This document shows, in pieces, positions 8,372 through 23,597 of a stretch of DNA of 37,630 bases. Both the position numbers and the translations under genes were made by a program. Each line of letters opens with the position of its first letter. Within the stretch, counting starts at the first letter, position 1. The stretch lies in NCBI GenBank assembly GCA_943704425.1, contig CALSCP010002497.1, positions 201,735 to 239,364 of the forward strand. Reading direction: 5' to 3'. Below the pieces are notes generated by a model that made no database searches, was not told where the DNA came from, and saw only the letters and a program-made list of their open reading frames with translations. The stretch is from Ministeria vibrans ATCC 50519. Taxonomy: Eukaryota; Protista; Filasterea.

Positions 8372-8444
8372 CGCGCCAAAACAACAACTTACTCTCGAGA
8401 TCAAATGAATAAAACATACTTTCACTAGTTCACTTTTTTTCGCG
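8372..8444. promoter_or_regulatory. E2F/SCB-like sites in the POLD3-TPP1-like divergent region
   Basis: CGCGCCAAAA at 8372-8381 (reverse complement TTTTGGCGCG) and TTTTCGCG at 8437-8444, within the ~290 nt separating the two head-to-head ATGs. Confidence 0.4.
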
Positions 8445-8552
8445 AGTGCATCCAGCTCCGATCGCTGACTCCGCTGTCGATTCGTGGGCTGACTGTGTCG
8501 AGGCATCTTTTTCCGCACACATACATTGAGTCGTTGACGTAGAGAACCGATC

Positions 8553-8872
8553 ATGGCTGCGATCTATGCCAAAGGGACTCCGTGGCTGTACGACTTGGCA
8601 TCCGTCAAACGAACGCAGCCACGCACAGGCTATGTTCAGATCAGACAGGTAGGGCCCCATATCCATGTGTGTGGCGTGAAGCCAACCCCCCTCCCTCCCC
8701 CGTTTGATGAGTAGCCAGTCGAAGAGGACAATCCGAACCGTCTTGCCTTCCCGGACTGTGTTCTCGTCGACATTGCCGATCCCATCCATCACGTCCGTGC
8801 TGCACTCTCTAGGGACGCTGTTCAATCCATCTTGAATGCCAGGTACGACTTTTGCGGGCCTTTCTTTTCTCA

Positions 8873-21856: not shown

Positions 21857-22827
21857 CTGAAAAAGGCAAGAGGAAGAGACATGATAATGTGTAAGAAGAA
21901 AAAAACCCCAAAGTCATAGAAACAAAGACTCTGTTCGCCGCAAAAATTAAAGACAAAAGAGCAGATAGAGAGAACAACAAGAAGCAGGCAGGGATGACAG
22001 CCACGAAAAGAGGAAAGAGCATTCTCACATCCCGCACTACCACGCCCAGGAGGTAATTNNNNNNNNNNAAAAAAAAAAAAAAAAAAAAAAAAGAAACGTC
22101 GGATTGGAAGGTGAAGACTCGGTTGAGAGCAAGGCCCCTGGTGACGATAGGCATATAGGACCATGCAGATGATCGAGGGCAGGCGACAGCGTTGGGTGAG
22201 TCGACACATTGGTTCAAAGGGGAAATGTGTGCAGTGCGCTCTGACACACTCACGTTTTTCACGCTGCGTAGGATTCGACGCAAACGGGGCGTAGGGGCAC
22301 CGGGAGGAATGAAAAACAAGTAGAAGAGTGCGCAAGAGACGGACAGCAACGAATAGAGGAAAGAGCGGAGACAGGAAAAAGAAGACACGAAAAAAAAAAA
22401 AAAAGAATTCACGAGGAGGACACAAAAACGCAGAAGATGACGGGAAGGCACCACACACGCACATGGGGGGGTGCTTGAAACCCCAGCGGCTGAGGAGAGG
22501 CCCAGGAAAGTCGGGCTGTGGAACTGGCCGCACAGCACAAAGGCCAAAGGTCGTTCTTGACGCGACGCAACGCCATCAAAAAAAAAAAAAAAAAAAAAAA
22601 AGGAGAGACGCGCGGAGGCTGCAGAGTCGATGGACAGCATTGGACAGACACGCCAATGGTACGCTGGCCCAGTGGCACGCGAGCAATGGTAGTTCAAGGC
22701 ACATTGCAACGCAGCAGCAGCACAAAGTCATTTCTGGCGACAACCACATCATGCAGTGTCACACACACGCACTGGCACAGACACACACACACACAGAATC
22801 ACATATCTACATGATGCGAACCCTTAC
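21857..22827 (-). other. ~970-nt structured 5'-UTR intron of RPL8
   Basis: gtaagg donor at 22827 after a short pyrimidine-rich leader; tttttcag acceptor directly before the ATG; many nested inverted repeats. Contains a 10-N gap. Confidence 0.7.
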
Positions 22828-22835
22828 AGTGTCTA

Positions 22836-22857
22836 GAGCAGAGAAAAAAAAGAGGCA
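22836..22857 (-). promoter_or_regulatory. 5'-terminal oligopyrimidine (TOP)-like leader of RPL8
   Basis: CCTCTTTTTTTTCTCTGCTC lies just upstream of the intron donor, typical of RP mRNA starts. Confidence 0.55.
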
Positions 22858-23189
22858 GATTGAATTTTCGTTTTGATCGTTCACCTTTCGCCCCTGGTTT
22901 CATCCTTCTTCGGCAAAAAAAAGAGGAGAGTATTACGAGAAGACCCCAAGTCCCCAACCAACCCACTGCCTGGACCTTTGAGTCAGCGCATAGAGTACGA
23001 ATACTTAATTTCATAGTAATCCAAAAGCCGCTCTCCACAAATCGCCAAATTCCCCATGTTTATTAGCATCACACTCCTTATTCTCCACTTCATACTAATT
23101 ATCCGGTGTGTTGTCGGTGTTTCAGAGAATATGCTGAAGAAGACTAGAAAATATATTCAAATAGCACTTTTTCGACAATTTTGGCTCTT

Positions 23190-23332
23190 GGCGAATTGCT
23201 CCGAGATCTGTTTGGGGCGATCCAAGTTTTTTTCAACGCGGATAGTTGTTGCACCCAAGACCACGTTAAGGGGAGAGACTTAAGTTCTCTTGGAATTTAG
23301 TTTCCTCGAGGGTTCGAACCCCTCATTCGCCA
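23190..23332 (+). tRNA. tRNA-Leu(UAA) with a ~54-nt insertion (putative intron 23211-23264) in the D-loop
   Basis: Acceptor stem GGCGAAT/ATTCGCC+A; anticodon arm AGAGA-CTTAAGT-TCTCT; long variable arm GGAA/TTCC; T arm GAGGG-TTCGAAC-CCCTC; T-run terminator at 23337-23345. Confidence 0.8.
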
Positions 23333-23336
23333 ATGC

Positions 23337-23345
23337 TTTTTTTTT
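23337..23345 (+). terminator. Pol III oligo-T terminator
   Basis: T run 4 nt after the tRNA discriminator base. Confidence 0.7.
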
Positions 23346-23458
23346 GATAGTCGTGTCGCGAAAGACTATTTTTTGAGTATAATTGTGATAATAATAATAA
23401 TAAATAATAATAATAATTATTATTATTATTATTTTTATTATTATTATTATTATTATTA

Positions 23459-23532
<74 letters not shown>

Positions 23533-23597
23533 GTGCTGCTCTTTTTATTTGGTCACGATGCGCTATTTTTTTGATAATAATATTTTTACGTCGTTCT

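Follow-up and report, generated by a model that had tools for sequence, protein, structure and literature searches.

The tRNA splicing endonucleases of eukaryotes are thought to use the body of the mature tRNA as a ruler for finding their cut sites, which is why nuclear tRNA introns lie at position 37/38. In this study we focus on a locus that does not fit this arrangement, and ask whether a nuclear tRNA gene interrupted in its D-loop can be a working gene, and where its exons would be joined. The locus lies at positions 23190-23332 (+) of a 37,630-nt stretch of Ministeria vibrans DNA, hereafter the window, which belongs to a 29.7-Mb draft genome of 2860 contigs, examined in part. A sequence-only reading had described it as a tRNA-Leu(UAA) with perfect acceptor, anticodon, variable and T arms and D-arm halves about 54 nt apart, and had proposed an archaeal-style bulge-helix-bulge (BHB) intron.

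A tRNA-Leu(UAA) gene with a divided D arm

Read directly, the interval encodes a class II tRNA-Leu(UAA), and re-reading of the coordinates bears out the arms and the spacing first described. All features are on the forward strand of the window:

23190..23210 (+), exon 1: acceptor 5' strand, U8, G9, CTCC and the 5' part of the D-loop, ending in the presumed G18; its 3' end is a proposed one
23211..23264 (+), intron of 54 nt in the D-loop; 3' boundary well supported, 5' boundary proposed solely from BHB-like geometry
23265..23332 (+), exon 2: G19, the remaining D-loop, D-stem 3' strand, anticodon, variable and T arms, acceptor 3' strand and A73
23190-96 / 23325-31 (+), acceptor stem GGCGAAT / ATTCGCC, 7/7 paired
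23197-98 (+), U8 (T23197) and G9, by sequence reading
23199-202 / 23270-73 (+), D-stem, 5' strand CTCC and 3' strand GGGG
23274-78 / 23286-90 (+), anticodon stem AGAGA / TCTCT, 5/5 paired
23281-83 (+), anticodon TAA in a 7-nt loop, C-T-TAA-G-T, with U33 and a purine at 37 (G37)
23291-307 (+), variable arm, 17 nt, with a 4-bp stem GGAA / TTCC
23308-12 / 23320-24 (+), T arm GAGGG / CCCTC with loop TTCGAAC; G53, T54, T55, C56, a purine at 57, A58 and C61 are present
23332 (+), discriminator A23332 (A73), by sequence reading

The 21 stem pairs outside the D arm contain no mismatch, while the two strands of the D-stem, CTCC and GGGG, are separated by 67 nt instead of the usual 9-11 nt or so. The anticodon assignment was checked against the alternative registers AAG and CUU, each of which loses either U33 or the anticodon stem. 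For some deletions ARAGORN proposes a tRNA-Lys(CUU), a reading that was dropped because it would place an A at position 33.

On the window as it stands ARAGORN reports no tRNA gene and Rfam at gathering thresholds gives no match, as expected for an interrupted gene, and this agrees with the earlier claim that standard tRNA scans miss genes of this kind. In a permissive Rfam run the alignment is limited to 23253-23324 (19.3 bits) and puts G23265 at the position of G19. Furthermore, a contig from an independent DNA run (X2) is identical to the window over 22616-23375, that is across the insert, which is therefore real DNA and not an assembly error. The insert and its 3' boundary are solid.

The proposed exon junction

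The junction put forward by the sequence-only reading joins 23210 to 23265 through the following elements, and the helices, bulges and outer pairs that it described match the sequence exactly:

23203-04 / 23266-67 (+), outer pairs G23203.T23267 and A23204-T23266, followed by the D-stem CTCC / GGGG
23205-08 / 23259-62 (+), proposed central helix of 4 bp, GATC / GACC, with one A.C mismatch (3/4 pairs)
23209-11 and 23263-65 (+), bulges of 3 nt each, TG^T and AC^G
23212-16 / 23254-58 (+), inner helix TTGGG / CCCAA, 5/5 pairs

We scored all junction pairs for a BHB, taking on each strand a 4-nt central helix strand followed by a 3-nt bulge cut after its second base. The junction 23210|23265 shares the top score among 1530 pairs, and it is the sole BHB-like arrangement among the junctions that restore a tRNA. 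When the exons were kept fixed, the intron was dinucleotide-shuffled and any of 70 junctions around the D-loop was allowed, an equal motif appeared in 137 of 5000 trials (p of about 0.027). Thermodynamics is less favourable to the central helix, whose ensemble pairing probability is about 0 in ViennaRNA as against 0.75-1.0 for the inner helix, and the BHB conformer lies 6-7 kcal/mol above the local minimum-energy fold. Set against a strict 'archaeal-style' BHB, the geometry can be drawn, but the motif is a relaxed one whose central helix is mismatched and does not belong to the favoured fold.

A deletion scan with ARAGORN fixes one side of the intron. All the best tRNA-Leu products have a deletion that ends at 23264, whereas the 5' cut is spread over 23203-23210. 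The exact product of deleting 23211-23264 is rejected because its D-loop is one base over the limit of the program's model; deletion of 23210-23264 is accepted, and that of 23206-23264 is preferred. After the proposed splice, which creates G18-G19, the D region is 21 nt long, compared with 18 nt in the Leu(CAG) of the same genome; the over-long D-arm already noted as a caveat is thus a real property of the product. Because the central helix is relaxed and thermodynamically unfavoured, the exact junction 23210|23265 is a proposal drawn from geometry, and one that we hold tentatively, at a little short of an even chance.

Each end of the intron looks like the half of the D arm that its neighbouring exon lacks. 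Its 5' end (TTTGGGGCG) can pair with the D strand of exon 1 and its 3' end (CACCCAAGAC) with that of exon 2, so that the unconstrained fold shows two D-arm-like hairpins. An alignment of 23196-23222 with 23249-23276 has 19 matching columns out of 28 (shuffle p = 0.08), which is a hint, and a hint only, that the intron may derive from a local duplication of the D-arm. Were this so, the 'central helix' might simply be the self-complementary GATC of one copy and its diverged twin GACC in the other, and the intron may record how such introns originate, namely from a hairpin with a self-complementary GATC in its loop that was duplicated locally.

Copy number, transcription signals and other disrupted tRNA genes

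Exon 1 and exon 2, searched separately, each occur once in the 29.7-Mb assembly. Searches for a standard T-loop preceded, at class II or canonical-intron spacing, by an anticodon loop with UAA gave no other nuclear Leu(UAA) that withstood inspection, and a search with the usual Leu D-loop returned only Leu(CAG), Leu(CAA), two Leu(AAG) genes and a permuted Ser(UGA). Several candidates for a second gene were discarded: C386:38165 is without stem, acceptor and terminator, C335:20052 belongs to a permuted gene whose anticodon region reads CCG, and the matches on C738, C2364, C2461 and C2820 are the 5' half of permuted Ser(UGA) or non-tRNA sequence. In the roughly 259 kb examined with ARAGORN, the sole intact Leu(UAA) is on contig C1523, which has a GC content of 20-28%; with UGA read as Trp, long ORFs on this contig show the conserved N-terminal motifs of COX1, COB and NAD1, and we take it to be the mitochondrial genome. 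The proposed check for an intact gene elsewhere therefore yielded none in the nucleus and a single one that appears to be mitochondrial. In six long ORFs of the window, 16 of 177 Leu codons are UUA. Very probably the interval 23190-23332 is the sole nuclear gene that this organism has for a UUA-reading tRNA-Leu. Two metagenome scans with exon words, meant to find relatives for covariation, gave 0 matches, and a protein homology search with the DTW-domain ORF gave no match besides that protein.

The gene is flanked by two transcribed protein genes, one ending at about 22846 and the next starting at about 23544-23580 according to RNA-type contigs. Contigs from three RNA-type runs cover these flanking genes and nothing between 22847 and 23543, the runs being of poly(A) type, in which missing coverage does not amount to silence of a gene. 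One RNA-type contig of run X9 leads from 22827 back to 21893, a single extra C standing between the two positions; a circular intron RNA and an assembly artefact are both possible sources.

Three signals bear on transcription of the locus:

23161..23171 (+), promoter-like element ATAGCACTTTT, starting 29 nt before tRNA position 1 (about -28), with its AGCAC core starting at -27
23227..23233 (+), T7 run in the intron, which may stop RNA polymerase III prematurely
23337..23345 (+), terminator T9, 4 nt past the discriminator, typical for the tRNA genes of this genome

The upstream element recurs. The motif ATAGCACWTTT has 25 matches in the 29.7-Mb genome versus 8 for the reversed control, and inspection of all 25 placed 16 of them 20-70 nt upstream of tRNA genes in the correct orientation, most of these genes being interrupted or permuted. 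The AGCAC core is found 26-68 nt upstream of many nuclear tRNA genes. From these occurrences, ATAGCAC(A/T)TTT is probably the external polymerase III promoter of Ministeria vibrans. The other nine copies are without a recognisable tRNA downstream; structured sequence and a T run come after two of them (C2431:133684 and C1564:24639), which are possible markers of other small RNA genes.

The A-box region (positions 8-19) is split by the insert, and 54 nt are added before the intact B box GGTTCGAACCC, so that the gene lacks the intact A box at normal distance from the B box that marks a standard polymerase III type 2 gene. A six-frame search of this draft genome, run without a eukaryotic positive control, gave no match for the TFIIIC domains B-block_TFIIIC and Tau95. 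If real, the absence of TFIIIC would parallel Cyanidioschyzon and would explain the tolerance of split A boxes.

In the 27 tRNA genes in which terminators were measured, these are mostly of at least T8 and lie within a few bases of the gene, with a median of about 9, a typical range of T8-T11 and a maximum of T34, which suggests that polymerase III here requires long T runs to stop. The T7 run at 23227-33 is the longest internal T run in the 27 genes, all the others being of 5 or fewer, and its length is close to that of the T8-T10 runs that serve as terminators in this genome; the sequence-only reading leaves it out of account. Either polymerase III would read through it, as the uniformly long terminators hint, or the output of the Leu(UAA) gene may be attenuated.

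The sequence-only reading had supposed a lineage with ectopic tRNA introns and had asked for other interrupted genes; four genes with inserts in the D region were found, along with permuted arrangements. Of the three findings named as able to refute that reading, two have thus turned out to favour it. In tRNA-Gln(UUG) on C1142, which has a 42-nt D-loop insert, the top ARAGORN score (118.6) falls at a junction that coincides with a BHB predicted by RNAfold, and this BHB is thermodynamically clear, with probabilities of 0.3-0.9 for the central helix and about 0.98 for the inner helix. In tRNA-Gln(CUG) on C1507 about 29 extra nt precede the 3' strand of the D-stem, and the Rfam tRNA model spans this gene end to end with a 31-nt D-arm insertion (46.9 bits). 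In tRNA-Leu(CAA) on C1255, a 22-nt D-arm insert is accompanied by a canonical intron. The fourth gene, tRNA-Pro(AGG) on C2085 (L090, about 47700-47840, minus strand), is interrupted by about 47 nt at ...TAGTG|GTATG..., between the Gs of the D-loop, which is the G18|G19 place proposed for Leu(UAA); its motif is equally relaxed, with 3/4 central pairs. Splicing there would presumably restore the conserved animal-type tRNA-Pro sequence. An attempt to place the Pro junction by homology to the Pro(AGG) genes of tRNA arrays failed, those genes being too divergent.

Genes in permuted order, whose 3' half precedes the 5' half, occur on C277 (two), C2431, C2647, C1769 (two), C2085, C2350, C738 and C335; the permuted loci are labelled L058, L080, L087/L088, L091, L093, L103, L128 and L047/L048, and several have an extra insert in the T-loop. 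Rotation of the halves on C277 gives a clean tRNA-Lys(CUU) with an ARAGORN score of 115, the sole permuted case confirmed in this way. Canonical introns are also present in the genome, in Leu(CAG), Leu(AAG), Ser(GCU), Arg(CCU) and Thr(CGU).

Two further observations concern unusual tRNA-like sequences. On C1049 (L065, about 8400-8560, minus strand), about 70 extra nt, probably two or more introns, lie in a tRNA-like gene whose acceptor and T arms are perfect and which has both the upstream motif and a T8 terminator. Dense arrays of short tRNA genes are found at C585:36035-36563, C2083:7140-8069 and 38151-38538, and C2093:9024-9400; in these arrays Leu(CAA) and Leu(UAG) measure 74 nt and have no long variable arm, some anticodons begin with G34, and the T-loops are divergent.

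Proposed splicing of the precursor and comparison with known systems

We consider it probable that the locus is a functional single-copy nuclear gene for the cytosolic tRNA-Leu(UAA) and the sole decoder of UUA. That it is instead a pseudogene, made by a chance insertion or a local duplication in the D-loop while the working gene sits elsewhere, in an assembly gap or in an unseen permuted form, seems unlikely. Such a reading would account for the terminator-like T7 run in the insert, unique among the 27 genes, for the mismatched and unfavoured central helix, for the over-long D-loop of the product and for the lack of RNA-type contigs over the locus, and a partial duplication would produce intron ends that look like D-arm halves, as these do (the same 19 of 28 columns, shuffle p = 0.08). 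Against it stand 21 stem pairs outside the D arm without one mismatch and an intact promoter-like motif and terminator; UUA is used, yet the pattern searches found no other nuclear Leu(UAA) gene, and interrupted tRNA genes are the norm in this genome.

A functional gene might also have another exon structure, either with exon 1 running to about 23198 and a D arm formed by CCC-AAGACCACGTTAA-GGG at 23254-23272, or with the 5' cut at 23203-23206. Rfam indeed aligns 23253-23273 as a D arm, and the top ARAGORN Leu scores (113.4) belong to deletions of 23206-23264 and 23204-23264, that of 23199-23253 being accepted at 109.5. Nevertheless the alternative D arm is without a GG to pair with the canonical T-loop, and the BHB scores for central, inner and outer helices are 0/1/0, 3/0/0 and 3/0/0 for these structures versus 3/5/2 for 23210|23265, which makes another exon structure improbable in our view. 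Finally, the T7 run sits between two complementary intron arms, as it would in a split gene of the Nanoarchaeum kind: there T7 would terminate a 5' transcript, the 3' part would have a transcript of its own, and trans-splicing via the inner and central helices would unite them. Yet neither a copy of the upstream motif nor an AGCAC core is present between T7 and exon 2, the gap between them is only 31 nt, and no trans-spliced nuclear tRNA is known from a eukaryote; we give this arrangement very little credence.

The genome contains homologs of the enzymes that splicing would need. A six-frame search found Sen2-like, Sen34-like and Sen54-type genes at C1078:28511, C1244:64007 and C1258:16177, as the check for SEN homologs had called for. 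Among solved structures, the best match of the Sen2-like gene is human TSEN2 (2.7e-28) and that of the Sen34-like gene is human TSEN34 (4e-15 to 2e-14). A gene for the RNA ligase RtcB, with several exons, is located at C2497:39180-41473, on the window's own contig and about 160 kb upstream. In the pathway that we propose, RNA polymerase III would transcribe the gene from the upstream ATAGCAC-T element to the T9 run, giving a precursor with an insert of about 54 nt in the D-loop. Pairing between intron and exons, by the 5-bp inner helix, the weak 4-bp central helix and the D-stem as outer helix, would bring the splice sites together in a fold that would amount to a relaxed BHB. The Sen2/Sen34/Sen54-type endonuclease would then cut after G23210 and C23264, and RtcB would ligate the exons, forming G18-G19 and a mature Leu(UAA) tRNA of 89 nt before addition of CCA. 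Transcription and cleavage of Leu(UAA), like its exact junction, are what we infer from the DNA, and we likewise infer that the endonuclease relies on the BHB motif.

The closest known parallel is the alga Cyanidioschyzon merolae, in which 27 of 43 nuclear tRNA genes have introns and 14 of 42 introns are in the D-loop, the commonest place outside 37/38, with lengths of 11-69 bp and junction motifs that are strict, relaxed or of a 'no central helix' type (PMC3728597). That genome also contains permuted genes and has Sen2, Sen34 and Sen54; its tRNA genes come with a promoter-like element upstream and a T-stretch, and no TFIIIC was found (PMC3728597). In both organisms a nuclear tRNA is interrupted outside 37/38, in the D-loop, next to permuted genes and homologs of Sen2, Sen34 and Sen54, and an upstream element with a T-stretch replaces a usable pair of A and B boxes. 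The two differ in the element itself, ATAGCAC-T here and TATA-like there. In C. merolae no termination signal is reported between exon segments, and expression was established by Northern blot and RT-PCR (PMC3728597); the intron of Leu(UAA), by contrast, contains the T7 run, and the gene is known from its DNA sequence. Judged by its features, Leu(UAA) is a further member of the Cyanidioschyzon-type disrupted tRNA genes.

Archaeal introns of the hBHBh' type, known from Crenarchaeota and Nanoarchaeota, occur in the D-loop and elsewhere, have two 3-nt bulges around a 4-bp helix and are cut after the second base of each bulge. Applied to Leu(UAA), that geometry regenerates G18-G19, and the flanking helices are present; unlike in the archaeal introns, the central helix here is mismatched and not favoured, and Sen2 and Sen34 are eukaryotic. 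Canonical eukaryotic introns at 37/38 presumably share the enzyme family and the ligase with Leu(UAA), whose insert is in the D-loop and not in the anticodon loop. In the 'ruler' mode of Sen54, recognition measures from the mature domain (PMC10539383). A mode of that kind is unable to place cuts in a D-loop.

Other eukaryotic exceptions are atypical introns in Chondrus crispus and the Guillardia theta nucleomorph, and permuted genes in Ostreococcus, Micromonas and the Bigelowiella nucleomorph (PMC13578239). Like them, Leu(UAA) departs from 37/38 with a BHB-like junction. All those cases are algae or nucleomorphs derived from algae, and a 2026 review lists such genes solely for a few algae and nucleomorphs (PMC13578239), whereas the host of Leu(UAA) appears to be non-photosynthetic; light-harvesting protein genes were not detected in this genome. 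For three holozoan protists, 104-114 ordinary tRNA genes have been reported (PMC6188563).

If the sole UUA-decoding gene needs excision from its D-loop, the endonuclease would be forced into a structure-guided, position-independent mode, which is documented so far in archaea and a few algae only. Should the organism be a close relative of animals, an animal-like Sen complex would show archaeal-like behaviour. Because the T7 run lies inside an essential transcript, Leu(UAA) would moreover be a clean test of RNA polymerase III termination. The gene also shows that tRNA counts made by standard finders can be badly wrong in protist genomes. A wider picture, possible though we lean against it, is that Leu(UAA) is an essential part of a genome-wide system in an animal-related, non-photosynthetic marine protist, in which most nuclear tRNA genes would carry ectopic introns or be permuted and would be driven by ATAGCAC without TFIIIC, polymerase III would read through T7, and an animal-like Sen2/Sen34/Sen54 would accept a relaxed BHB anywhere in the tRNA. 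If true, it would have no precedent outside algae and archaea. The kind of gene is already known; the lineage, if confirmed, would be the notable part.
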